From positions 42,532,001 to 42,596,000 of the forward strand of contig NC_135655.1 of assembly GCF_964188315.1 (NCBI RefSeq): DNA of 64,000 nt, given 5' to 3'. Within the stretch, counting starts at the first letter, position 1. Every line of letters starts with the position of its first letter. Made by a program: the position numbers and the translations under genes. A model generated the notes under the pieces. The model made no database searches, was not told the origin of the DNA, and saw only the letters and a list, made by a program, of their open reading frames with translations. Origin of the DNA: Podarcis muralis (Eukaryota). This document shows positions 3,238 through 63,390 of this stretch, in pieces.

Positions 3238-6200
3238 ATGAGCTGTACGCTGCCTTTTGCTACCTTGCTCATGGGACTCCTGCTGACAAGAACCATGGCC
3301 TGGACCTCGACTGGAAAGACACATGCGGAACTGATCAACAATCTTTACAGTAAGTACAATACAGAGCAAACAGAACCAAGGACCACCGGCAGCAGCCTGA
3401 CGTTCAGGGCTCGCCTCTAAAACAGCTGATGAAATGTTTGGATACTGTCCAAAATCCTCACTTATTTTTAGCATTGTTGACTTGACACCTATTTCATGGA
3501 GTGGATGTCAGTGTGGAAACCTGTTTTAAAATTCTACCTGCATATGAGCTTTAAGATTCTGGGCTCGTGCCTGTCTGCTCTGCCTGTGTATTCAGCTATA
3601 CAAGCAGCCACAAATGATACAATAGAGAAATCCATTCTAAGCATCTAATTTAAGAAAGGTTATTCAGAGCATGCAGAGGCTCAGCTCCCCTACAGCTGAG
3701 GCAGGTAGCCATTTCTTCTAATGAGTTTCTTTGGGAATGCAATAATCCATAATTGCCATCCTCCTCAGGCTGCCTGTCTTAGATGGGAGCTTACTCAAAC
3801 AGTACAGAAACCAGGAGAGTCAATCTGCCAGTGGCTAGGATGGCCAGAAAAAAGCAAAACAATTAACTGGGAACCTTTCTGTATTTGTCCATCCAACGAT
3901 TTTTTATTTTTTATTTTAAAGAAAATGAGTACCGTATTTTTCACCCTATAGGACGCACTTTTCCCCCTCCAAAAATGAAGGGGAAATGTGTGTGTGTCCT
4001 ATGGGGCAAATGCAGGCTTTCGCTGAAGCCTGGAGAGCGAGAGGGGTCGGTGCGCACCGACCCCTCTCGCTCTCCAGGCTTCGGGCAGCTCTCCACAAGC
4101 CTTGGGAGCCCGGCGCGACTTCCCGCCGTGCTCCCAAGGCTTGCGGACAGCAGCCTGCAACCTGAAACCCGGGGAGTGCAGCGGGGCGCACTCCGGGCTT
4201 CGGGCAGCTCTCCGCAAGCCTTGAGAGCCCGGCACGTCTTCCCGCTGGGCTCCCAAGGAATGCGGACAGCAGCCTGCAGCCCGAAACCCAGGGAGCACAA
4301 CAGAGCGCACCCCGGGCTTTGGGCAGCTCTCTGCAAGCCTTGGGAGCCCGGCACGACTTCCCACCGGGCTCCCAAGGCTTGCGGATAGCAGCCTGTTCTG
4401 GGGGCTGGGGTCGGGGGAAGCTTGGGCTTCTCCCGCCCCAGCCCCGCGCCTGGGGGGGAAATAATTTTTTTTTTAATCCCCCCCCCCAAAGAAACCTAGG
4501 TGCGCCCTATGGGCCGGTGCGCCCTATAGGGCGAAAAATACGATATATTTTGCAAGTTACAGCCCTGCCATTGCACCTGCTTTTCCTTGGGCTCACCCAG
4601 GGCACAACTGCAATGTTAGGCCAATTGTGTGGATCTTTTCTGTGGAATGGATGATTTGTGTAAATGACATCCTAAGAGAGCACAGCATAATCTGTCCAGT
4701 TCTACAGGTGAAATCTTAAATCAAGTTCATTTCCCCAGTCACACTTTCCCAAGCTGTTTTATTGGACGTCAAACCCAGCTTAAAGCACTGTCTCTGTGAA
4801 CAGATCTCTTTGTGTTTGGTATTTTTCTGTAAAGCCTTCATATGGAACAGGACTGACCAGGGTATACTTTTACACAAAGCTATTGAGAGCAATTGCTTTT
4901 TCTCTTATTTTACATGAGGTGTAGCCAGAGACCTGAATGTGAGCCTGTTCCCAAATTGTCCAAATGAGCTGATTTCTATTTTGCGGCTCATGGGAACAGA
5001 GGGACCACTTATAATCGGGGCCAAGGACGAGCAGAACCTCCCCTGCATCCAAATCCCAGCTTGCTATTGCTGCTTAGGATGGAAGGTAGGGAGGGTGGTC
5101 CATTTTTGCTGCGCCAGTTCCTTGGGCCCCTTGGGGAATTTGTGGGCTTTGGGTCTGAAACCTCTGTTGCCTTACTCCTATAATGCCCTTATTTGGGGGG
5201 GGGGGGTTTCCTACTGGCTGCCTCTGGCAGGAGACCCACTGGCAGTAGTGTCCCACCATCTCGGGTGGAGCTTGGGCTTGTTATGTAATGGAGCCACACC
5301 GCAAGCAAAGACGTGATGCATCCTAAACTGCCCACCTCTTAACACCAGAGGGTTAGGATTGCAAACCTGTACCAGCTTTTCACAGGCAGTAGCAGGGTGG
5401 TCTGCATATGGGGACTTATTTGCATGAACTGGAGCTGAGCAATGTGGCTGGGTTTCAGCATCAAAGGTTTATTTGCTGAATTTGGAGTCTAGAGCAATAA
5501 CCCCCTTTCCCTTTCCCTGGTGTGTTGCATGCATGTGTATGGATAGATAGTGGATACAATGAGAGCCTGTGTGGTGTGGTGGTTAGAGTGTTGGACTAGG
5601 ACCTGGGAGTAAAGGTAAAGGGACCCCTGACCATTAGGTCCAGTCGTGACCGACTCTGGGGTTGCAGCGCTCATCTCGCTTTATTGGCCGAGGAAGCCGG
5701 CGTACAGCTTCCAGGTCATGTGGCCAGCATGACTAAGCCGCTTCTGGCGAACCAGAGCAGTGCACGGAAACGCCGTTTACCTTCCCGCCGGAGTGGTTCC
5801 TATTTATCTACTTGCACTTTGACGTGCTTTTGAACTGCTAGGTTGGCAGGAGCAGGGACCGAGCAACGGGAGCTCACCCTGTCACAGGGATTCGAACTGC
5901 CAACCTTCTGATCGGCAAGTCCTAGGCTCTGTGGTTTAACCCACAGCGCCACCTGCGTCCCTTGGACCTGGGAGACCAGGGTTCAAATCCCCACTTGGCC
6001 ATGAAGCTCACTGGGTGACCTTAGGCTAGTCACTGTCTCAGCCTAACCTACCTCACAGGGCTGTTGTGGGGATTAAATGAGGAGGAAGAAACCCATGTAT
6101 GCCACCTTGAGCTCCTTGGAGGAAAAAGTGGGATAGAAATGCAATAAATAAATTACTATTTTTTAAAAAACAACAGTGTAAATTGAGTACCTGTCTTTGG

Positions 6201-9200
6201 ATCACAATGCAGTAAAATTCAGTACTGAACAACCTAAAAGTGATACTAAATATAAATAGTAATAAAAAGTATTCTGCTGTCAGCCTTATTATCCTCTCTC
6301 GTGTTTTTCTGTAGAAAATGGTGTGATTAAGTCTCAGCAAGTCCTTAAAGTGTTGTTGGTAACAGACAGATCCCACTATATCAAGTATTTTCCATATATG
6401 GACTCTCCTCAGTCAATCGGTAAGAAATGTTGCTATAGATTGCAATGTCACTTAAAGGAAATACTGCATATTTTAGAGACCATATTGTCCATAGCATTGT
6501 CTCTTGAGAACTCTCCAAATCCTAGAATCTAAAGTTGGGAGGGATCTCAGAAGGCATCTAGCCCAGCTTCTGCTTAGATATCTCCAGCTCGCTACCTCCC
6601 AAGGCAGGACTGTTCCACCCTCGAGCCATTAAGCAGCTTTCCTAACCCTTTCCCAGAATCTGCTTCCCTGCTACTTCCACTTGCTGATTCTAGTCCTGTT
6701 CTCTGGAGCAAATCCCTGTGAACAAATCTACAGTACTCCTTCTTCTACATGAGGGTGTCTGTCAGGTCTCCACTTATTCTTCTCTAGGCTAAACGTACTT
6801 GGCTCTTTCAAGCATTCTTCATAGGGCATAGTTTCCAGATCTCTTAATGATCCTGGTCACCCTGCTCTGGACACCCCCCTAGTTTCTCAATGTCTTCCTT
6901 AAAATGTGGCATCCAGAACAGGACTCTACCTCAGATGCAGCCTGGCCAGTTTAGAAAGCAAGTGAAACCATTATTTCTTCTCATCAGGACACTATGGCTT
7001 CTGTTCAGGCATTGGCTTTTTAGCAGCTGCATCACACTACTAACTCATTCAGCTTGTGCCGAGCCAGGTCTCCTCCACTCTATCCTTGCACCTTCATTTG
7101 TGTGTTTTGTACCTAAATGCAGGACTTCGCCTTTATCTCTGTCAAATTCCATCGTGTTAGTTTCAGCCCAGCGTTCTAGCAGCCCAAGATCGTTTGACGT
7201 CTTAATTCTATAAGACTGAGAGTTGTCCTTTGTGCATGGGCTGCAAAAGTAAGCTCTGAAAAAACTAGCAAAGTGGACAAAATATTCTACAGATAGTATG
7301 TCAAACTGAAAGCTGGAAATCCTTAGGTCTTTGAGCTGTCTAGGAAAACCAAAAGGGCGGATTTGTGGTGAGAAACGTACAAATCGCTAGAAAATGCTCC
7401 AATTGTTATAACATGAAAAGCAAACTTATCCACAGCTTTCTTTCAGGGTACAAGGCAACCATCAGTGCTCCTCACATGGTAAGACATACTTTTACATCCA
7501 ATAATATACAGTATATGCATTGATAGCATTTGGTGGTTGAGGAAGCACACAGGCCATGAACCATCGCAGCTGCCTTATGCCAAGTCAATTCTTTGGTTCA
7601 TCTGGCCGAGCCCTGCTTTCTCTGGCTAGCAATGGTACTGGCTTTAGGCAATCTTCTGTGGTCCTGTTGCCTGAGATCCCCTGAATTGGTGACGATGGCA
7701 AATTCTTTCTGCTAGGCATTGGCTGAACAATCCTATGTGCTACAGATGCGTGTAAACAAGCCCACCGGTTTTTGGGTAGTCCCCAACCCCTCAGAGCTTA
7801 GGACAGCTGTTCCTTGCTTCGTTCAGGAATACAGGTTGCACTCGCTGCTGGCTGGCTATCAGTTCAGAGATGTCCTGCTCATCATGGGGCAGAAGTAGAT
7901 ATCTCGGCCTACCGCTTGACATCACCTCCTTTATCCTCTCTCAAGAGACAGCATCTGCCTTCTTCAGTCTCAGGCCCTTCCCCTCCCTTTCTATGACTGC
8001 TACTGAGGCTTTGAAGCCACCAGGAGGAGCTGGAAAACTTGCAGGTCCTCTCAGTCTCACCCCACCCTTTGCATATCATCGAGGCTCCTTGGGAGCAGAC
8101 AGCCTAGTCGTTTCTTCTCCACACCCTGTGTGTGCCTCTATTGCAAACTTTAACAAGCCTCGGAGAAACTTCTCAGCTGAAATATCTGTGGGCGTCAACT
8201 TAGCAGAAGCAACCTCTAAATCTTTAGTAAGACTGTGTATCTTAACCATCCTGCTGCTTGTTGCCTTTTGGCAAGGGGATCGTGAAAGATGCTGGTGTGG
8301 GAAGAGTGAAATATAGGTGCTTTCTCCCACAGCATGCTCATGCCCTTGAGTTACTGAAGGACCAGCTAGTGGAAGGAGCAAAGGCGTTGGATGTCGGATC
8401 AGGAAGTGGATACCTCACAGCTTGCTTTGCAAGGATGGTAAGCAGAATGGAAACTGAGAGCAAATCCTTCTTTTTCTTTTTCTTTTTGGCTAAAAAGTCT
8501 ACTTGTAAAGTTTACCTTCTTAAAGAACAGATGATGTTATGCATATGATTGTTGTTGCTTCTCTGTAGAGAAGCATTTGATTGCTGAAAATTATTGAATT
8601 TGGATACATTGCAAGGGGTCTGCTGAAGTGAATTTTACTTTTAACACAATTTTAACAAAAGCAACAAGAAACGCCTCTCTACATATAGAATTCTGGAACT
8701 ATTCCTCCACTGTCCTGCCAAGTAAATTGCCTAGCACTGGGGGGGGGGGGGAATAGAATGAGGCTGTAGTCCTATACACAGCTACTTGGGAGTATGTCTC
8801 ATTAATTCAACGTGACTTAGTTCTGATCAGGAATGTATAGAATTGTACTACAAGATTTTCTTCCATTGGAATTGGCCAATTAGTATATTTAATGATCATA
8901 CGGGATAGGTAAAATTGTAGGAATAACTGCAAAGGGACTGTTCACTTTCAAGGTAACCAGTCATTGGAACTATCCTTCCGTCATTCTAAAACTGGATGGA
9001 GAAATAATTGGATAAAATTGATCAGGCATTGCAAAAAAGGGAACCTCTCTGCTCTCTCAGATAATTTTGTTTGTAGTAGTAACACAGATTTGAAGCACAT
9101 GTGGCATCTCTTGACAGGTGGGTCCCACAGGGAAGGCAGTGGGAATCGAACACATTGAACAGCTGGTTCATGAGTCCATCAAAAACCTCAGAGAAGATGA

Positions 9201-12635: not shown

Positions 12636-12648
12636 GGGTGAACTTTAA
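12636..12648 (+). CDS. Alternative terminal coding exon of the PIMT-like gene giving C-terminal ...WPRGEL*
   Basis: Donor CCTCG|GTAAAT at 11005/11006. Acceptor TCTCTCTTTCTTTAG|G GGT GAA CTT TAA at 12635/12636. Parallels the PCMT1 -RDEL splice isoform and gives 228 aa from MAW. AATAAA at 13131-13136. Confidence 0.75.
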
Positions 12649-14870: not shown

Positions 14871-15289
14871 ATGTTTCACAAGTGTACAATAAAGTTGGTA
14901 GTACAATAGTTTTGCAAACCAGCATTTTAGTTTCCCTGTGAATGTCCTGGTGTGGATGTGCAAAATAAAATGGAGCATAAAATTGTATGCAAGTATAGAT
15001 CTGAAATTGTTGTTTATGGTGAACACTTTTCTATTCTCTAAATTTCTATTTTTAACTTTTCTTTCTTCTTTTATTCTCTTTTTTCCCTTCTTTTTGAATA
15101 TTGCTTTACAGATGTATAAATAATTATGTTCATGTGTATATGTATGAAATTTGTTTCTTTATTTCTTTTCTTATTTGATATTCTTTTGTTTATTTTGTAT
15201 TTAATAAAATTTAATTTTTTTAAAAATGGAGCTAGCTGGCTATAATGTCCGCGTAAGCTTATCGGAGCCGTTTCCCCTGAAGGTTTGCA

Positions 15290-16080
15290 TATAAGCGAAC
15301 TTCTGGCAGACTGAGCAGTCGCTTGTCAGGTCTGTCTTGTCGCGCGACTTATCCGTCACCGAGAGCGAGCGAGCGAGGGCGCGCGATTGGTTTAAGTGGC
15401 GAGGCGTCAGCGGGCAGCGCCGAGGAGCCGTGTCGCCGCGACGCGCGGATCATGCGGCTGACACTGCTGCACTCGGAGCGGTACTCGCGGTCGCTCTTAG
15501 CCGAGCCGGGCGTCCGGCGCGGGTTGGCAGCCGCCGCGGCCTCGCTCTTGCCCGGCCGAAGCATGGAGGAGAGCCAGGCGGGCGGCGAGCAGGGGAGCTC
15601 CCCTCCGCCCGTGAAGAGGCTCCGGCTGTGGACCGGGAAGGGGAAGGCGAAAGGGAAGCGGCCCGGGCCGGCCGAGGAAGGCGAGAAGCGCTACGTGCCG
15701 CCTCCCAAGAAGCGCAACCCCGGCGTCAGCTTCGGCCAGAGCCACTTCGCCGAGACCAGCTACTACTTCGAGGGCGGCCTCCGCAAAGTGCGGCCCTACT
15801 ACTTCGACTTCCAGACCTACTGCAAGGGCCGCTGGGTGGGCGAGAGCCTCCTGCACGTCTTCGGCACCGAGTTCCGCGCCCAGCCCCTCGAGTACTACCG
15901 GGCCGCGGCCCAAGCGGGCCGCCTCCGGCTCAACGAGCAGCCCGTGCGGGACCTGGGCGTCATCCTCAAGGTGAGGCCGGGACGGAGGGAGGATGTGGCG
16001 CCGGGGTCCGAGTGGCGGGCGATTCGGGAAAACGACGGAGCGACCCTCCTGCTTGGCAGTTCGCAGGCGTGGAGATGGCA
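15290..16080. promoter_or_regulatory. CpG island over the RPUSD2 promoter and exon 1
   Basis: Very high GC and CpG density. CCAAT (ATTGG) at about 15386. Confidence 0.75.
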
Positions 16081-19000
16081 TGTTCGTATCCCCCCAAAAC
16101 AGGCGATGGGGAAGTGGGGAACCACCCACAGGAAAGTAGTATAGGTGGATCAGTTACCTTGCTTTCTGTTTTGGAGTTGACATGTACACCTAAGTGGTAA
16201 TAATAATTTTATTATTTATATCCTGCCCACCTGGCTGGGTTTCCCCATCCAGGAACAGTTTTGCCTCCTTCCCTGTCGAACAAGTTGCAGAAACCTACAT
16301 ACATGGTTGATGCCCGGAGGGAGGGGAGTTATAAATAGTATGGTCAGGAGGAAATGGCATGCAAGTAGACAGTGAAACTTTCCTGTTTAAAGTGATGAAA
16401 ACATATCTGTGAATTGTCACTGTTAATAAGCTAATTACCACTCTCTGTACTTACCTCCTTATCATTTCCATCTGATCTCACTATATTCAATTCTCTCCCC
16501 CCAAACACACACACTTCAAAGTCATGAATATATTTGCCTGCAAGTCTGGACCATCATTTCCTGCATCTGACAAAGTGGACTGTAGCCTACATGCAAAAGT
16601 TTATACCATAATAAATGTTACAGATAGGTAGCCGTGTTTGTCTGCCATAGTCAAAACAAAAAGAATTCCTTCCAGTAGCACCTTAAAGACCAACTAAGTT
16701 AGTTCTTGGTATGAAGTGTGCATGCACACGAAAGCTCATACCAAGAACTAACTTAGTTGGTCTTTAAGGTGCTACTAGAAGGAATTTTTTTTGTTTTTTC
16801 ATAATAAATGTGTTAGTCTGTAAGGTGCCCTAAGACTCTTCATTGTTTTTGCTAATATTCTTACTATTTCATGGGAGCATGTCATTATGTACATTAATGG
16901 CAGAAAGCATTTTTGTTTTAGTTTGTAAAGATGTAAATTAGAATTCACTTTGCTCCCTGTTGTTGTTGGAACAAGACATCACAGAAATTGACATAATATG
17001 AAGGCCTTTACCTGACATAGGATAATGTATTTTCGATACAACAAAATATTTTCAATGTTTTAGTTAGGATGCAAGCCTAACCATCTCTACTAAGAAGTAA
17101 ATCATATTGCATTCATAGTGGCCTATTCCCAGGAAGTGAGGCTAGGATTGCAGTCTTAGCTAAGTGCTAGAGTTTTATATATAAATTACACTGCTATATA
17201 TAATGTTACCCACCTTGTGCATCCTTGGGGGATATATAACCAGTAGATAATAATATTCCCTTTTATTATTTTTCACATTTTTATTTATTTTTTAGTAAAT
17301 GGAGCTAATAACCATAATTCTTCACAAACAGGCTATTCTAGGAAGTTTCCTGCTCCTGCTAACGTACAGTAATTGTTTTGCTTTCAGAATAATGACTTCA
17401 TCCGGAACACCGTACACCGCCATGAACCTCCAGTCACAGCACAGGCTATTGAGTTCCTGGAAGAAAATGATGAGGTTGTGGTTGTAGACAAACCTTCATC
17501 CTTGCCTGTCCATCCATGTGGCAGATTTCGGCACAACACTGTCATTTTTATTTTGGGTAAAGAGCACAACCTGAAGGAGTTGCACACTATTCATCGGTTG
17601 GATCGCCTGACGTCAGGCGTCCTCATGTTCGCAAAGTCTGCAGAAGTGTCCAAGAGGATCGATGAGCAAGTGCGACAGCGACAGGTGAAGCCCCGAAGGT
17701 TTTTGTTCACATTTATAACCCACCCTTCCTCCAAATAACTCAGGGAGACATACAAAGGTGGAGTTATACTCTCCTGTTGTCCTCACAGCAACCCTGTAAA
17801 GTAGGCTAGAGTGACACCCATAGAGTTCATGCAGCGTTTGAAATTCACCAGGCGCATTTTGCACCTGGCTATCGGCCACTTGCAACCAAATGAAGATGCC
17901 CGGGTGCCAGGATGGCACCTGATGTCTTTCCTCCATCTGGAGGTGCATGCCTGGGGATCCTTGGATTTTGACTGTTTTCACACACTAGCAACACATCCTG
18001 TAGAATTCTATCTGTTATATTTTATCAGCACAATCAGAATGAATTTCAGGAACCCAAAAGTTATATTGACTTTCAAGCCATCTGGCCTCAAAATGACAAC
18101 TAGGCATTCTATTTGGCAGCTGTAGCCCTGGTTTAAGGAGTCATTTGGCACCTAGCTTATATATTTGAGTTCCTAACACTGGCTTCATGGTAGAAGCAGG
18201 GATTCAGACAGGCCCAACACTCCAACCACTATGACATATTATTGTTGTCTATAAAAAAATTCACAGTGAAATGAAGGGATTTGGTGGACATTACCCTTGC
18301 ATAAAGCACTCAGATAGGCATAGGTACTGGTTCAGACCCTTGCCAGATACCATGCAGTGGTCTTTGTGGGGCTTCTGCATTCTAGAACTTAAACAGATTC
18401 TTATTTTTGTTTCCTCCACCCCACTTCCCCATACCCCCCAATAGCTGGAGAAGGAGTATGTGTGCCGTGTACTTGGAGAATTCCCAGAAAATGAGGTGAC
18501 GTGCGAAGAACCCATCCTGGTTGTCTCTTACAAAGTCGGGGTGTGTCGAGTGGACCCCAAGGGTAAAGTCTGTAAAACGGTCTTCCGGAGGCTCAGCTAC
18601 AATGGCAAGACTAGTGTGGTGAAGTGTTTTCCTTACACTGGCCGCACCCATCAGATCCGTGTCCATCTCCAGTTTTTGGGACACCCTATTGTTAATGACC
18701 CCATCTACAACACCGATGCCTGGGGTCCCAAAAAGGGCAAAGGTGGCCATATTAATAAGACGGATGATGAGCTGCTTCGGGCTTTGGTGGAGGAGCATCT
18801 TTCAAAACAGAGCTTGGGTATCCTGGACGTTGCTGAGGAAGATTTGAAACCCATTGTAGGAGACAGAGTGCAGGAGGCTGTGTTGGACACCGCTGTAAAT
18901 GTCAGTTCTCGCACTTGTGAGGAATCTGCAGGTGGAGAAAAGAGCAGGATATCGGCATGTTCTCGGAATTCTGTTCCTCAGGCAGAGCTGCACAAGACGG

Positions 19001-19194
19001 AAAGTGGAGAAACTTGCTCAAATGAGTCCTGGGACGAAAAGGACCCTCTCTGTGGAGAATGCAAGATAGTGAGGCCGGACCCATCACCCAAAGATCTAGT
19101 GATGTATCTCCATGCTTTGCGCTACAAGGGAGCAGACTTTGAATATTGCTCTAAGATGCCAGCCTGGGCACATGATGACTGGGAAGAGACCTGA
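15452..19194 (+). CDS. RPUSD2: RNA pseudouridine synthase domain-containing protein 2 (RluA family)
   Basis: Exons 15452-15970, 17388-17684, 18445-19194, giving 521 aa. Motifs: YFEGGLRKVRPYYFDF, VVVDKPSSLPVHPCGRF, catalytic HRLDRLTSG, PYTGRTHQIRVHLQFLGHPIVNDPIY, MYLHA. Confidence 0.95.
16561..16850. mobile_element. Nested Penelope-like element remnants forming a long palindrome
   Basis: GTAGCCGTGTT.GTCTG and GCTCATACCAAG..TTAGTTGGTCTTTAAGGTGC termini. 51-bp inverted arms at 16664-16714 and 16736-16786. 12-bp duplication at 16607-16618 and 16800-16811. Confidence 0.6.
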
Positions 19195-26679: not shown

Positions 26680-29600
26680 TTTTAGAAGAAATGTAGCAAT
26701 TAGTTAGGCCAGTCAAATGACCACGCAGCAGTCAGAGAAATAAAGCAAGAAAGTTTTAATTATTTGCCGGCAGCAAGCAATGGCAAAGAGGAATAAGTTC
26801 CAAAGTCCGGCCCCTCCAAACAGGGGAGGCTTCCCTTTATACAGTACATTCTTAAATCAGGTCTTTATCCAATCAAAAGTTACAGCATTACACATACTGT
26901 ACAGTACTCAGATAGATACATTAGGTTCCACCTGGAGACAAGAACTGCTTTGCCTAGAGATTGTGTTCCAGATGGATACATTAGGTTCTGCCTAGAGATA
27001 AGGCATGAGGAGTTGGACATTCATGTCTTCCATGTCCTTATGTGGTAATGTTTATCAGCCTGTCTCTGTGTGTCTCTGGGTAGTGGGTGTCTGAGTGTAC
27101 AGTGGTGCCCCGCAAGACGAAAAACTCGCTAGACGAAAGGGTTTTCCGTTTTTTGAGTCGTTCAGCAAGACAAATTTCCCTATGGGCTTGCTTCGCAAGA
27201 TGAAACGTCTTGCGAGTTTCTTTCCTTTTTCTTAAAGCCGCTAATAGCCGTGCTTCGCAAGACGAAAAAACCGCAAGACGAAGAGACTCGCGGAACGGAT
27301 TAATTTCGTCTTGCGAGGCACCACTGTATTTACTGGATATGGGGGCCTGGCCAAATCAACAGAATGGCTTCCTTGCTTAACATTTTAACTCTCAAAATGG
27401 CTTCCCTGAGTACGTTGCCACAGTAGATTGTAGTAATCCTGACTTCACTCGCTTGTACAGAGAGAAATTAGTTCATTGGTCTTATCCTCCTGTTAGTGAT
27501 TTTGAATTTGTTGTGCTAATGATTATAGTTGGCCTGATTACATCCTACATTTTGTCATTTTATTGTGTAACCCACCTGATGAACAGTGGGAAATAAATGC
27601 ATAAAATAAATAAAATAAAAATAAATGCAATGCAAAACCTTTGCAATTATCTATGTATTACCCACTTTATTCCTGTCCTAGGGATAACTTTATTCCTGTC
27701 CTGCAGCTACATACATACATACATATATAATTTTATTTGTGTGCCACCTTTCCGCAGTTAAAACCATGCTCAAGGTGGCTTACAACATGAAAAATATATA
27801 CAGTGGTACCTTGGGTTACATATGCTAAAGTGGTGCTCCAGCTTAAGAACAGTTTCAGCTTAAGAACGGACCTCTGGAACGAATTACCGTATTTTTCGCC
27901 CTATAGGACGCACTTTTTCCCCTCCAAAAATGAAGGGGAAATGTGTGTGCGTCCTATGGGGCGAATGCAGGCTTTCGCTGAAGCCTGGAGAGCAAGAGAG
28001 GTCGGTGTGCACCGACCCCTCTCGCTCTCCAGGCTTCAGGAGAGCCGCAGCACCAGCCCCACAAGGTCGGGGGACAGCGGGGAGGCGGAACGGCGCCATC
28101 CCGCTGTCTCCCGATGTGGTTTGGAGGCTGACGGCGGGGAGACGCGTACTTCTCCCCGCTGCCAGCCCCGCAAGCTCAGGGGACAGCTGGGAGGCGCAGC
28201 GCGTCTTCCCGCTGTCCCTGGAGCTGATCTGAAGGCGGGCGGCAGGGAGAAGAGCGCTTCTCCCCGCTGCCTGCCCCGCAAGCTCCGGGGACAGCGGGGA
28301 GGCGCAGCGCGTCTTCCCGCTGTCCCTGGAGCTGATCTGAAGGCGGGCTGCGGGGAGAAGAGCGCTTCTCCCCGCTGCCGGCCCCACAAGCGCCTGGGGG
28401 GGGATTTCCCCCCCTTTATTTCCCCCCAAAAAAACTTGGTGCGTCCTATGGGGCGAAAAATACGGTAAGTACTTAACCCAAGGTACCACTGTAATTACAA
28501 ATATAACAAAAGTAGTCATAAACGATAAAACATCAAAAGGTATACAACCAAACTGAAACAATTTCCGCATAAATCATAACATCCAACACAAAGATACAAA
28601 AAATTAATAACAGCAGCACTCCTGCTTCCAAAACAGTGTATCATCCCCCCCCCCCCAAAAAAAATACCATAGCAGCTGGAGTCAGGGCTGCACTCTCCTA
28701 GGCCAGGTAGAAAAAGGCCTGCAAGGCAGGGAGCAGGACTTCCCAGACTCAAAGAACATATCATAATGAAATTCTAAATATTCTGTTCAGCAATCGAGAC
28801 TCTAAACATTACATATATGTTGTGTCTCTTTCTGTAATGGTGGCAAAAAAGAGAGAGCTAATTTTCTGACACTAAATGTACTCTGCTCTTACAGAGCATC
28901 ATGATCTAAAACTCTGCATTTTGTGACAATTCTGTCAATAATAGGCTAAAACATATTTTTTAAACATTAGTTTAAGCTGTCATATTAACCTATATTTAAT
29001 ACATATGCCAAGTTTCCTGCTTTCTGAGTTATCATGCAAAGTGAAACTTCTAGAACAATCTGTAGACTGAATCTTAAGCCATTTGTGCGTAGGGAAGGGG
29101 GAAAGCCTCAGCCAGATTTTATAGAAATTCTTGCTACTGCAGCTCTGCAGACAAAAATGCAAGCAACTGTTTAGTTCCAAGTGTCTTGCAGTGTTATCTA
29201 TGGAAATAATGCTACAACAGTGTATGAAGTTCATTTCCATACATGAAAATGTTTATTTGGATTGCAGACATAGCAAATACATTTGGTAATTTTCTTTAGG
29301 ACAGTTACATTCTTCTTTTCAGTTGGAGTGTGTTCATCTGCCTTTGACTTGAAATATTCAGACTGCCAGTCTTGGTTATTAAAAATTACAATGATAGTAA
29401 GGAATGAATTACTATCCTGAGTGACAATTCAGAAATCTGCTTTAAGTGCATTAGTGCATTCTGAAAGGCTTTATCTTTGAGACATATGCATACAGTACTA
29501 CTATTTTGAACAGCAGAAGTTGTTCTACAAACCAGAAATCTGTTTATTGTGTAATATGCAATGTGGCTTTAAGAAATAGTTTTGTTGTTGCTTCAGAAAT

Positions 29601-35600: not shown

Positions 35601-38600
35601 CACCGCGGAACGCAACCTGAAAATACTTATCCCGAAGCTACTTCAACCTGAGGTATGACTGTACTTATTTACTTTAGAAGACCTGGTTCCTCCCTGCCCC
35701 CCAGTCTTTGCATTGTTTGTTTAACTAGTCAGTAGTGTAAGCTGGCCTTACCATTTTGGTATCTGAAAGTTAGGTTAAATGTGCTTAGAAGTTAAGTACA
35801 GTGGTATACCTCGGATTACATACGCTTCAGGTTACAGACTCCGCTAACCCAGAAATAGTGCTTCAGGTTAAGAACTTTGCTTCAGGATGAGAACAGAAAT
35901 TGTGCTCCGGCGGCGCAGCAGCAGCGGGAGGCCCCATTAGCTAAAGTGGTGCTTCAGGTTAAGAACGGACCTCCGGAACGAATTGAGTACTTAACCTGAG
36001 GTACCCCTGTATAGGCAGCAACCATTTTGCATGGGGGCTCCATTCCTGGCCCCCACACCCATCAGTGGAACATGCATAAGCCCGTTCCACCCCCAATCCT
36101 CCCCTCCAAAAGGACCTGTGTTTTGGCAGTCACATGTCAGTTGGACGTTCCTAAAGTGGTCGCTGCCTGTACATAAGTTTCAGTAAACAGTTTGTTTCTT
36201 TTTCTTTTTTTATAGGATAATGTAAACAACAAGCAAGAATGGAGCAAAATGGATAGGACGCTTCTCTTCTCAGATGAAAATGAAATGGATATGACGTCTG
36301 GTCACACTATAATAATTAAGCATGCCACTGAATTGAAACAAGAAGTTATACAAATGAATGATCTCAGTTTTAATAGCTGCGCTACAAAGGAGAATGAGTC
36401 CTGTTTGTCTCAACAGAAGACAAACACTGAAAACACAAACAAAATAAATTTTGATGACTTCTTGAAAAGCTTGAAGTCCACTAAACTATTTCCTTCACCC
36501 ATTGCTTCAGAGGCTTCAGAAAGAAATGTGTGTCCTTCAAAGGAGAATGTATATACCTACTTAGAAGGCGGAAATAGCAAGAACACAGATTTTGGAAGAC
36601 CCGCTAACAGGCAAAACTATGCAAACGTTAATGAAGGAGGTGTTCGCATAAAAAATGCTAGCAGTGATGCCTCAGTGTCTTGTTATCAGGGAACTATTCC
36701 ATTTTCTATGCCCTTCGGATCTGTTACTTCTATGCCTGTTCTACATGGTAACACTAATAGAAAAAGTGGGGTTTTAAACAATGCAGCATCCTTAAATTCT
36801 GCAGATAAAACTTCTATATTTGGATTTGGTGAGGACATGGAAATAACTAAACCCACATACTTAATAGATAATCCTATAAATGCTGCTGGATTCCAAGATA
36901 TGCCATCTCAAGAAATGGGAATTGGTAAGAAAGGTATAACTCTATTAGATAAGACAGTTTTATTTTCCCTGAGTGAAGACAATGAAATGGAGTTTACCAA
37001 GAGCTGTACAGTAGCTGCGCAGTATGATATACAGCAGTGTGAAAGAACATCTCAAGTGCCCTCCTTACAACCTTTGGATAAAACTGTTTATCATAACAAC
37101 ATGGACGAGACTAAAGCCATAACAACCATAATAGATCAACCTGTAAAAGCTGCTGGTGCCCAAGCTATGCAAAAACAAAGTGAGTTGGGATCAACTAATG
37201 TAACCGGACCAGCTTGTGACAAAACTCTTGTATTTCCCCAGAGTGAAGACAATGAAATGGAGTTTACCAAGAGCCTTACAATGGCAGTAGAGGAAGCTCC
37301 TCTAGCACAATCATGGATACCTGCAGGGAGTACCAACATGTCTGTATTTAGCAGTAACATGACAATAAGCAAGTCCACAGCTTTTCCAGAAGGTAAAACG
37401 ATTATGTATATGCACAATAACGGCATGGAAGTAACTAAGCCTATAAGTCACATAATCAATACATCTCGAGAAGATACTGCTTTCAAGCCTTTGCAGCTGA
37501 AGAAAAAAGAGATGGACAAGGTGATTCGATCAAGTTCAGCCAAGGAAGAGACCATGTGTTGCTTGGATAAAGACAATGAGATGACGTTTATGAGGAGCCA
37601 TACAGTGTCAGTAAACAGTGATATTATTATCCCATGGGCCAAGGTAGCTACTCAAGTACTGTCCTCCGCTCCGATAGATAAAAACAGTATGTCCACACAC
37701 AGCAGTGATGCAGCAATAACGAAATCCACTACTTTTGTTCCTGCAAATAAAACGATAATGTGTAATAACTCAATGGAAATAACAAAACCCATATCGAGTG
37801 CATTTTTAAACAGATGTTTCAAGTCTTTGCCACAGCAAGAGATGAGCAATACCACAATACCAGGCTCAGTTACAGATAATACTGTTCTTGCCCTACATGA
37901 TAATGAAATGGAGATGACAAAGTGCCATACAATAACTGTAAATGTTGATAACATCTCCCAGTCAGAAAATTCTTCCCATATACAGTTTCATCAGGATGAT
38001 ATGAACATTGCAGGACCTTATGCCATTACTAAAAACCCTAAGGGAAACTTGCCTTGGAATGTGATGAAGCTGGAAATGGATGCTGGATGGGAACCCTCGT
38101 CAGATCAAATTGCAACATTAGCTATGGCTGGCACAGAAATGGTTAAAAGGCAGACAGTGCCATTTGACAGCAGAACATCCCTGTATTGCCAGCCAGCTAG
38201 CCAAGCTAAGCTCTTAGGCCACCCCAATAAGACTGATGCATTTGCATTTTACCAGGATGGCACAGAAGTCACAATCCTGCCACCTAGTGCTGCTGTTAAT
38301 GGGAACCCGGAGGCACCTGAGAAACAAGAAATGCTAACTAAAAACTTAAGACAGAATTTAGGTAATGTACCTTTCCCTACATGTAGGGGGACATTGCAAG
38401 ATATAGAAGCTACTAGAAATCAAGCAGTTATCACTTACGACCCGAACTATCCATGTGATGCTGAGAGACAAAGACCAAAGTCCTCGACAAGGTCAGAAGA
38501 AAAGGCTTTTGGATTTTTAGGCAGTGAGAACATGGAGGTGAATGGTGTTAAAAATCAATGTTTTCATTCTTGGACGAAATCTAGCTCTGAATTTCCCCAT

Positions 38601-41600
38601 TTCAGTTATGGGGGGAAACACGATGCCCAAATTGACAATGATATCTCTCAAAAATGCAATTCACCTGCCAGCGTGACGCTACCTATAGCTCTGGAAATTG
38701 TCCCAGAACAACAGAACTTTTTGAAAATCCAAGAGAAACAGCTGGAATCCTGCACATTTAAAGCTAATTTTGCAAAAGAATCTACCTTGAATGATGGATA
38801 CTGTGAAAAAAATGATTTTACATTTCCAGTTAAAATGTCTGCGTCGTATACAAAGTTACATGAGGAAACTGTTGTTGAATCAAACACAGAGAGAATGTGC
38901 ATATCAACTGCTGAATTCAAGAGCCTGAAAGATGATCCAAGAAAGTTATCTCAGTCAAGACAGGTTGGTAGGTTTGCTGGAGAAACAGAGGCTTTTCCAG
39001 TTGATAAAATAACTAAAAAATGTGGTACTGTGTTGTGTGACTGGAGTAGCACTGCAAAAGATAATAACATGGACCCTCCTCCCGTCAATAACGTTACTTC
39101 AGAGGAGGAACCAATCCTTTTGTCTAAACTATCTGATGTTGTCAGTGATTGTTCAAAGCTTAATGGTAATGGGAAGAAGTCTGAACTTTTCCTACCCTCT
39201 CAAGACATTGGGAAAGAATTGCCCCAAATGGCAGTGAAGCCAGCTGATCATTTGGAGTTGAGAGAAGATGTAAAAAAAGTGTCTAATATTCCTACTGCTT
39301 CTAATGAGTGGACAAACAATGATTTTACAGATGTTGCTCCTCTCTCCGTGCCCTTAAATGCCATGTGGAACGATAGCTGTAAGATGAAAAAATCAGCCCT
39401 GGGTATCTTCCCACCTAAACTGCCAAATAAAAGGAAGCCTACTGTTTCTAATGTAGAATATATTGGTGCCAGATCAGAAGAGAAGGTAGAAACTCAAGGT
39501 TCAAAAATCACTCAGTTTCTCAGGAGATCCCTGGACAAAGTTACCCCCAACTTGAGTCCATCTCATTATATAGATGAAGAACTGCTTCCTGCATGTGTAG
39601 GTGAAGTGGATTTTGATGAGTCTTTAGGTTGTGAAGTGCCAGAAAAGCTGATGAATGAAAAGGAGCTTGCTGATACAGAAGGCTGTCTGCTTGGCGTGTT
39701 TGAAACAAGTAACAGGAAGAGAAGGTCTTGGAATCAAGATGATGAGAAACTTCAGCAGGAAAAGAAGCTCAAGACAGACGAGGGCTGGAATGATGCAGTA
39801 GAGTTAAAGCAGGTGGGTTTAAGATGACTGTTTGGCACTTGGTCACATTTTCTCGCGTCTGTAAAATCACCTATGAATTAATGAACAAGTACATATCTAA
39901 CAGTGGGTTTTATCCTAAAGGAAGCTGAAATGGTATAGTAGCTATAAATTCATTAAGTGGTTTGGGGCAACTGATTATTCTTTCAGTTGTAGTGCTGTGC
40001 TCCTGAAGGGTGGGTAAGAAATAACATTTTTTTAAAAATCAGGTGGTCTTTCAAATATTTGGTGATCCACAGCAAACAAAGAAATAGTTGAGTTGCTGTA
40101 TCTACAAAATAATCTTGCTAATTTAACTTTTATTGAATAATTATTTTTTATTTTAGCCCCTCTCCAGCACAATGTTAGCTCATGAAACACAGGAAGATGA
40201 AAATGTTACCAACCTATTAGCTACAAATATGGAAAAGAAGCAAACCAGCAACAGCAGCTCTTTGGATTCGGTTAAGGCTGATACAGACTTCTCTAGTAAG
40301 AATTCCTTCTTATCTGATTATATTGATTTCAACTAATTCCATCAGTAAAGAACACTACAGTATCCTGTATGTGATAGAGGTATTCAGGAATGAATGGCTT
40401 CACAAGCACACCTATGCAAATAGGATAGACAAGCTTCTAAATGAGACACTCTTGTATTTAGTGTCATCTAAGGGTTCCAATGGAATTTCTCAAAATAACT
40501 TGTCAAAAGATTATATCTGATTTGTGCCCATATGCATAGTCTTGCTTCGTCAGGTTACTGTTCTACTTTTGCAAGTCCAAATAGACCCGCCCCTGCCCCC
40601 TTTGCATTCCAACAATATCTTAGAGCAAGAAGCTGCTGGAGGAGAGGACAGTGAATTGAGGTCTACTTAGTTTGGAGCAATTTTCCTTTCTCAGCAGCCC
40701 TGTATCCCTGCCCCACCCACTCCAACCCTCTGGTGAAACTTTTGAGTGCGTGCAGATAGCTATAGTGGTGAGTTGAGCCAGTAAAAAAATATCCTGTAAA
40801 CTTATTTAACCTACTTGGAATCCAAACCATCACCTCTGATTAGAGTCTCCTCTGAGATTCTTCTTCAAAGTGGGAAGCTATAATGGAAAAAAGTGCCAGG
40901 TCCTCTGTTCTCTTACAGTTTTCAATCATACTCTTACCGCATTTCACCCTTTCTTCCTTTGGTACTGCTAAGAACGCAGCTGCCTTGCTGGTTAAGACTA
41001 GAAGTCCATCTCCTTCAGTGTTCTGTTTTCAAAAAGAGCCAGCAAGCCCACACACAGGGTATGATGAATATAGATAGGCTATTTGCCCCAGTATTTATGG
41101 AAGTCTATTGACACTAATAAGAAGCTTATGTTCTTAGCTTTTAAGGTTAATCGCTATTGATAGATGGATCCTTAATAGCTATTGATGGTTGATCCACCCT
41201 AAACTTGTCCAATGCTGTTGAAAACTCTGGCATTGTTGCATATTGTTTTGGTAAATTCTAGAAGATACCCATGTATTAAACCAGTGTTTTTCAACCTTTT
41301 TTGGGCAAAGGCACACTTGTTTCATGAAAAAAATCACGCGGCACACCACCATTAGAAAATGTTAAAAAAATTAACTCTGTGCCTATATTGACTATATATA
41401 AAGTAATTATCTTGAATAGGAATCAAATAAACACAAAGAAAGTAGTTTATAATTGCTTTATTGTGAAATAGTAAGTAAACAGAAATATGAAAAATTATAA
41501 AATACTTTATTTTTAAATCTTTCGAGTTTTTCAATTTTTCCCACGGCACACCTGGCAACATCTCGCGGCACACTAGTGTGCCGCGGAACAGTGGTTGAAA

Positions 41601-60428: not shown

Positions 60429-63390
<2,962 letters not shown>

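Follow-up and report, generated by a model that had tools for sequence, protein, structure and literature searches.

To our knowledge, the only known isoaspartyl repair enzyme, protein-L-isoaspartate O-methyltransferase (PIMT, the product of PCMT1), is regarded as cytosolic. The described protein closest to the one considered here, zebrafish Pcmtl (NP_957062.1), is an active isoaspartyl methyltransferase with a KM of 3.6 uM and a C-terminus that reads GDEL, and N-terminally extended isoforms have been suggested as a possibility in its case (PMC7859441). Here we analyse a gene of the same orthology group, likewise with an xxEL-type tail, which lies on the + strand at positions 3238-12648 of a 64-kb stretch of the Podarcis muralis genome (contig NC_135655.1, positions 42,532,001 to 42,596,000), free of N and referred to below as the window. 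Results of our analysis indicate that this gene, PCMTL, is a paralogue of PCMT1 with two conserved alternative ends, a hydrophobic N-terminal leader and a KDEL-like C-terminal tail. We estimate at about one half the probability that one form of its product has a cleaved signal peptide for the endoplasmic reticulum (ER) together with the KDEL-like tail and works in the ER lumen, the same gene giving also a cytosolic enzyme.

Enzymes of other families provide partial parallels to such an arrangement. The ER form of MSRB3 acquires its N-terminal signal peptide through the alternative use of a 5' exon. Like PCMTL, it repairs damage to an amino-acid side chain and has a non-canonical tail, KAEL, with which it is listed as ER-localised (PMC2140024). 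It differs from PCMTL in that it reduces methionine sulfoxide, does not use S-adenosylmethionine (SAM), and has its isoforms determined by splicing rather than by alternative starts. METTL9 is a SAM-dependent methyltransferase of the seven-beta-strand type; it has a signal peptide of 18 aa and enters the ER lumen, where it becomes N-glycosylated, and its reported roles are mainly non-catalytic (PMC12313917). Although it belongs to an unrelated family, has a histidine substrate, is a Golgi protein, and is devoid of a KDEL-like tail, it is a precedent for a SAM-dependent methyltransferase that reaches the ER lumen by means of a signal peptide.

The gene and its long form are already present in automatic RefSeq and Ensembl models, and the sequence itself is not new; its reading as a secretory-pathway repair enzyme appears to be undescribed. 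Our literature search found no paper analysing the N-terminal extension or targeting of PCMT1 or PCMTL, and two of the papers retrieved (PMC5862578 and PMC5054351) had no bearing on the subject. The leader was not described in the zebrafish study, though it is present in the cyprinid, characiform, and other fish models compared here. While the authors of that study credited the paralogy to a teleost duplication, our tree and the synteny extend the paralogue to tetrapods, coelacanth, and cartilaginous fishes.

Results

As judged from its sequence, the window gene is lizard PCMTL, an orthologue of zebrafish pcmtl ('PCMT-like' in RefSeq) and an older paralogue of PCMT1. A preliminary description of this DNA, made from the letters of the window, had proposed a PIMT paralogue, and this is borne out both by the neighbouring genes, described further below, and by a maximum-likelihood tree of 31 proteins, in which the PCMT1/PCMTL split has a support of 100/100 and the labels PCMT1 and PCMTL need one change each. 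The tree places the window protein among the squamate PCMTL sequences. The RefSeq model of Zootoca vivipara (XP_034967109.2) is of equal length and 97.2% identical to it, and the Hemicordylus protein (P0129) is 94% identical, vs. 73% identity to PCMT1. An exact look-up of the Zootoca P0241 sequence, which is 97% identical to the window protein, and of Erythrolamprus P0142 found neither of them on record. None of the 120 best PCMTL matches was mammalian, and while no formal test of loss was made, the gene has apparently been lost in mammals.

The methyltransferase domain is well preserved. Exons 7 and 5 match Pfam PF01135 with 54.7 and 22.4 bits, respectively (cut-off 20.3), and exon 7 matches the structure of human PIMT (PDB 1I1N) with E=5e-24. 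Among the 89 columns that are invariant across 12 PCMT1 proteins and a copepod enzyme, 83 are kept in the window protein, those of motif I included. By analogy with the zebrafish orthologue, from which alone the activity is known, the window protein is a predicted isoaspartyl methyltransferase. Its motif I (LDVGSGSG) is intact, including the Asp residue that is altered by the zebrafish D83V substitution, which abolishes activity (PMC7859441). An AlphaFold2 model of the Hemicordylus protein, used as a proxy together with 44 orthologues, was too poor for use (mean pLDDT 51.8, pTM 0.37).

We rebuilt the gene model from the raw letters of the window. Starting from the ATG at 3238, the coding sequence comprises 744 nt in eight exons, all separated by GT-AG introns, and encodes 247 aa. 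The leader (3238-3294) consists of 19 codons that begin with an upstream in-frame ATG in the context gggATGa. The ATG codons at 3238-3240 and 3295-3297 share the frame, with no stop in between, and the closest in-frame stop 5' of the leader is a TGA at 3193. The second of these ATG codons is the canonical start, from which translation begins with MAW, and with the remainder of exon 1 it occupies positions 3295-3349. Its context, accATGg, is a strong, optimal Kozak sequence; the leader ATG has a purine at -3 but not the G at +4. The 19-aa in-frame extension ahead of MAW, as proposed in the preliminary description, was found again on re-reading of the frame and sequence, together with its 12-residue hydrophobic core and the T-M-A/W residues at the -3/-1 positions. 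Further coding exons are located at 6315-6419 (exon 2), 7447-7478 (exon 3), 8333-8437 (exon 4, with the SAM-binding motif I in the form ALDVGSGSG), 9118-9238 (exon 5), 10272-10357 (exon 6), and 10836-11005 (exon 7, whose donor, CG/GTAA, contains a stop codon). The 13-nt coding part of exon 8 (12636-12648) finishes an Arg codon and adds Gly-Glu-Leu-stop, to give RGEL.

The exon structure is matched by RNA of another squamate. A 1272-nt spliced contig (L001; Logan SRR6291270), which codes for a 262-aa orthologue and has about 87% nucleotide identity to the window gene, is colinear in blastn with positions 3207-3349 and then with every exon in turn; the alignment passes from 11006 to 12635 and continues over about 330 nt of the 3' untranslated region (UTR), which by this homology extends to at least about 12964. 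This colinearity indicates that, in the related species, exon 1 of the mature mRNA includes the leader and no fewer than 31 nt upstream of it, and that the RGEL exon is used. The spliced terminal exon giving ...QWPRGEL, another feature of the preliminary description, is thereby confirmed, as the mRNA of the related squamate spans the junction of exons 7 and 8. We also considered that the leader could be a translated polypyrimidine tract ahead of a hidden acceptor (ctgctgacaag/AACCATGG), which is ruled out by the colinearity of the contig through the leader and the 31 nt upstream. A mini upstream open reading frame (uORF) of three codons, ATG GGA TGA (ATGGGATGA), overlaps the leader ATG on the same strand at 3233-3241; a similar one was found in the other squamate mRNA and none in Gekko. 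A TATA-like sequence, ATATAAAAAA, is located at 3162-3171, about 70 nt 5' of the leader ATG, and was dropped as a candidate promoter element because Gekko and Chelonia do not share it.

To collect orthologues, we used a chained search that led from the exon-4 open reading frame (ORF) to a hummingbird protein (P0024, which begins MTCLLPCTLLPLMGLLFARTMAW) and from it to the family. Among the PCMTL cluster representatives examined, 85 carry the leader and 16 start directly with MAW; these 16 are for the most part homology-built partial models from birds. The window leader is identical to that of Hemicordylus P0129, and its homologues are found from shark to bird: in horn shark, sawfish, electric ray, chimaera, gar, sturgeon, bowfin, coelacanth, and many teleosts, and, among tetrapods, in caecilians, salamander, frogs, turtles, tuatara, geckos, lizards, snakes, and birds. 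The leaders have a common end, ...[PL]-M-G-L-L-L-[ST]-R-[T]-MAW. At the second residue ahead of the internal Met (window codon 3286-3288, AGA), 83 of the 85 sequences have R and 2 have K, and no other leader position is as conserved.

A comparison of DNA from eight species points to a coding segment that is selected mainly for hydrophobicity. In all eight, the leader ATG is situated 19-21 codons 5' of MAW and has G at -3. Indels inside the leader are of 3 and 6 nt and leave the reading frame intact. Variation is lowest at the second codon position (15 extra states vs. 28 and 32), and pN/pS summed over pairs is 0.57 for the leader vs. 0.26 for the mature part of the same exon, in line with what a coding but fast-evolving signal peptide should show. 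In turtle and teleost, an in-frame stop is present one or two codons above the leader ATG, which indicates that the position of the start itself is conserved. The leader is contained in spliced mRNA contigs of squamate, frog, and teleost; the frog contigs have 126-278 nt of 5'UTR ahead of the leader ATG, which in one of them is the first AUG. Conservation across jawed vertebrates rules out a chance ORF in the 5'UTR.

The same data bear on the proposal that initiation at the upstream ATG is infrequent or gives an unstable product. In that case, the stretch would mainly control translation of the MAW-initiated cytosolic enzyme and the xxEL tail would be a relic, which is also a common assumption about the RDEL tail of PCMT1. 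Purified mammalian PIMT is cytosolic and begins at Ala2, the curated zebrafish RefSeq protein apparently begins at MAW, and our literature search gave no proteomic evidence of the long form. Moreover, the MAW start has a perfect Kozak context, ACCATGG, in seven of the eight species (gtcATGg in frog), compared with the leader ATG, which is devoid of G at +4. Such a proposal, however, leaves out of account the conservation of amino acids and hydrophobicity over more than 400 My, the frame-keeping indels, the constraint on second codon positions, and the retained start position, as well as the invariant G at -3 and the leader ATG that comes first in a frog mRNA. For these reasons, we consider a little-used start or a mainly regulatory role of the stretch rather unlikely.

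The kind of signal that the leader resembles was judged by explicit rule-based criteria, according to which it has more in common with a cleavable signal peptide than with a signal anchor or with a mitochondrial presequence. The uncharged core comprises 12 residues in the lizard, and the median run across the 85 orthologues is 13. The Kyte-Doolittle 10-mer peak of the leader is 2.44, and the Eisenberg mean hydrophobicity at the peak is 0.73-0.85. The candidate cut T-M-A/W has T, S, A, V, or G at -3 in 84 of the 85 sequences and A or S at -1.

Were the leader an uncleaved N-terminal anchor, like that of cytochrome P450, its N-terminus would be luminal, the catalytic domain would stay in the cytosol on the ER surface, and the xxEL tail would be irrelevant. 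The invariant basic residue right after the hydrophobic stretch suits the positive-inside rule, as does the N-terminal flank of sauropsid leaders, which has little or no charge. In addition, an anchored enzyme would avoid the problem of luminal SAM, as this cofactor is plentiful on the cytosolic face. The hydrophobic run is nevertheless short and has a central P-x-G, and a simple Hessa-scale sum for the best 19-mer is about +3.9 kcal/mol, which indicates that the leader is too short and too weak for a membrane span, insertion as such not being predicted. An anchor is thus unlikely.

The features that could make the leader a mitochondrial presequence are of a different kind. Acidic residues are absent from 82 of the 85 leaders, which are rich in R, S, T, A, and L, and the net charge of teleost leaders is +3. 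The matrix processing peptidase (MPP) is known to cleave at an R-3 motif, and the invariant R at -3 of the M/A junction would suit such cleavage after R-T-M, with a product, AW..., that equals the mature N-terminus of the cytosolic form. The leaders are, however, only 19-22 residues long and uniformly hydrophobic rather than amphipathic. The hydrophobic moment at the peak is 0.04-0.21 (0.21 in the lizard), in teleost leaders a moment of 0.59 is reached only over the first 11 residues, and the net charge of the lizard leader is just +1. A hydrophobic core of 12-13 residues is expected to engage the signal recognition particle. Mitochondrial import seems to us unlikely.

The C-terminus of the window protein has two forms. 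Read-through of the exon 7 donor ends the protein at ...QWPR with the TAA at 11007-11009, and splicing to 12636 gives ...QWPRGEL with the TAA at 12646-12648. The CGG TAA sequence that places a stop inside the donor is kept in lizard, gecko, turtle, and bird (window positions 11004-11009; L002, L003, and L007). Its conservation in sauropsids indicates that two C-termini are built into the gene, and, as the stop is a part of the splice donor, donor strength is coupled to the end of the reading frame.

Spliced tails of the orthologues are mostly xxEL-like. RGEL is found in squamates, gar, arowana, tarpon, and coelacanth, GGEL, SGEL, GSEL, GDEL, and SDEL in teleosts, KDDL, KDEL, RDEL, and LNEL in frogs, and RDEF in birds and softshell turtle. 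The RGEL tail does not conform to the PROSITE pattern [KRHQSA]-[DENQ]-E-L, as it has G at -3, and the preliminary description was right to call it a non-canonical KDEL variant. It may be compatible with a receptor code widened by experiment, in which KDEL receptors accept at -3 any residue but Pro (AKxEL reporter), R is effective at -4, F is equal to L at -1, and I is partially active there (PMC2140024). Human SUMF2, which ends in PGEL, is ER-resident (PMC2140024). By analogy with these cases, a function of RGEL as a KDEL-receptor retrieval signal is plausible. The maintenance of KDEL-like tails in many independent lineages argues against their being relics. It would also be left unexplained by an anchored cytosolic enzyme, and an xxEL tail would be useless on a mitochondrial one.

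A different C-terminus, ...QWP(G/R)RWRWCCSS..., rich in Trp and Cys and sometimes ending in CCSS or CCSF, was observed in teleost, bowfin, and eel PCMTL models (among them P0191, P0208, P0211, P0216, and P0221). It corresponds to the read-through isoform and may be a lipidation or membrane-binding tail.

Mammalian PCMT1 isoforms II (-RDEL) and I (-RWK) have the same fold and chemistry as lizard PCMTL, and the donor of exon 7 is alternatively used in the same way, with either a short basic C-terminus or one of the R-xEL type as the outcome, although they belong to a different clade and their read-through end is RWK instead of R only. The preliminary description had contrasted PCMTL with an RDEL isoform of PCMT1 devoid of a signal peptide. 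This turned out to be too simple, since PCMT1 has a conserved N-terminal extension of its own. PCMT1 models share the strongly conserved sequence ...ALEVVSFLGKLLCAVAALKAALYLLRRVCLA-MAW (P0253-P0355), which was found in bichir, paddlefish, teleosts, coelacanth, caecilians, salamander, frogs, turtles, crocodile, squamates, birds, and marsupials. The extension comprises 40-75 aa, is amphipathic (moment 0.69), ends with ...LYLLRRVCLA-MAW, and is unrelated in sequence to the signal-like leader of 19-22 aa in PCMTL. Its resemblance to a longer hydrophobic or amphipathic segment followed by RR is a point that the anchor explanation of the PCMTL leader can claim in its favour. An upstream start is present in the mouse PCMT1 RefSeq entry, of which the protein was used from residue 59 (PMC7859441), and human PCMT1 isoforms with longer and shorter N-termini have been listed (PMC7696048). 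As both paralogues pair a hydrophobic extension from an upstream ATG with an xDEL exon, the arrangement is suggested to be older than their split.

Downstream of PCMTL, the window contains on the + strand a gene of an RPUSD2-like pseudouridine synthase (15281-19191; PF00849, with PseudoU_synth_2 exons at 17373-19191), a giant exon of 1203 aa similar to KNL1 (36216-39824; PF19221) with four MELT motifs, and an exon identified with Pfam as encoding a RAD51-type N-terminal helix-hairpin-helix (61034-61531; PF14520). We take this neighbourhood to correspond to the human 15q15 block and not to the block of PCMT1. In the Gekko and Chelonia loci, the PseudoU_synth_2 gene is located about 3.3 kb 3' of PCMTL, and the order of genes in the Sylvia locus is CCDC32 (-), PCMTL (+), and PseudoU_synth_2 (+). 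CCDC32 was not identified within the 64-kb window. A CpG-island-like stretch at about 500-1750 (GC 0.53-0.61, CpG observed/expected 0.6-0.84) lies 1.5 kb 5' of exon 1, which is itself CpG-poor. By analogy with Sylvia (L007), this stretch may be the promoter or the minus-strand first exon of CCDC32; three minus-strand ORFs in it had no Pfam match. Two other GC-rich stretches, at 3900-4650 (in intron 1) and at 27790-28570, contain near-identical long ORFs with internal repeats rich in Pro, Ala, and Arg, and are probably copies of an interspersed repeat.

Discussion

The features described above can be combined into a mechanism by which PCMTL would supply two cell compartments. Because the mRNA begins 5' of the ATG at 3238 in related species, scanning ribosomes would meet the leader ATG first, and initiation there would yield a precursor of 247 aa, or of 244 aa in the case of read-through. 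The 19-residue leader, with its hydrophobic core of 12-14 residues, would direct the precursor through Sec61 into the ER lumen, to be cut after T-M-A, and an active methyltransferase domain would thereby be delivered to the lumen. There, the RGEL form would be recognised by KDEL receptors and kept in the early secretory pathway, while the tail-less ...QWPR form would be secreted or passed onward. Leaky scanning past the leader ATG, whose context has a purine at -3 but is devoid of G at +4, would lead to a start at accATGg and to the ordinary cytosolic enzyme. We infer from the start-codon contexts that both starts may be used. The luminal enzyme would methylate L-isoaspartyl residues in long-lived proteins of the ER and the secretory pathway, and for this it would need luminal SAM.

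Certain observations weigh against a luminal enzyme. On the physiological side, the chief caveat is the supply of SAM in the animal ER lumen, which would have to be assumed. The n-region of the lizard leader (MSCT) contains neither K nor R, though R is present before the core in fishes, amphibians, and turtles. The small residues around the candidate cut are less informative than they appear, given that the internal start dictates M and A at -2 and -1 in any case, and the purine of its Kozak context partly limits the codon at -3. A signal peptide does not explain the invariant R/K, which is not needed by signal peptidase and would also suit a positive-inside flank or the R-3 motif of MPP. Neither an N-glycosylation sequon nor additional cysteines are present in the window protein. 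In the zebrafish study, TargetP gave no signal for the Pcmtl RefSeq protein, which apparently starts at MAW (PMC7859441). As for the tail, RGEL itself is not among the motifs that we saw tested in the study of KDEL receptors (PMC2140024), and several orthologues have weak or untested endings, namely RDEV in turtles other than softshell, RDEI in geckos, and RDEH in Xenopus and Discoglossus.

Taken as a whole, the interpretation put forward in the preliminary description is partly supported. The paralogy and the reality and conservation of both ends that it called optional are well supported, and the targeting function is reasoned from the sequence.

Isoaspartyl damage accumulates most in long-lived proteins, many of which are secretory or extracellular, such as ER chaperones (calreticulin, for example) and the proteins of matrix, lens, and egg. 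We propose tentatively that a dedicated enzyme of isoaspartyl repair, ER-luminal or secreted, was ancestral to jawed vertebrates, that PCMTL, with a cleavable signal peptide and a KDEL-like tail, is this enzyme, and that the same gene gave also a cytosolic form, although the odds are somewhat against so broad a claim. If it is true, the -RDEL tail of the 'cytosolic' PCMT1 isoform II, a puzzle of 30 years' standing, would be a remnant of the ancestral arrangement; alternatively, this tail may act together with the conserved N-terminal extension of PCMT1 itself. The apparent absence of PCMTL from mammals is a further question for research on ageing and protein damage. With an entry signal and a retrieval signal on one conserved paralogue, repair of isoaspartyl residues would take place inside the secretory pathway, SAM would have to reach the animal ER lumen, and the very presence of an xDEL exon in PIMT genes would be explained.

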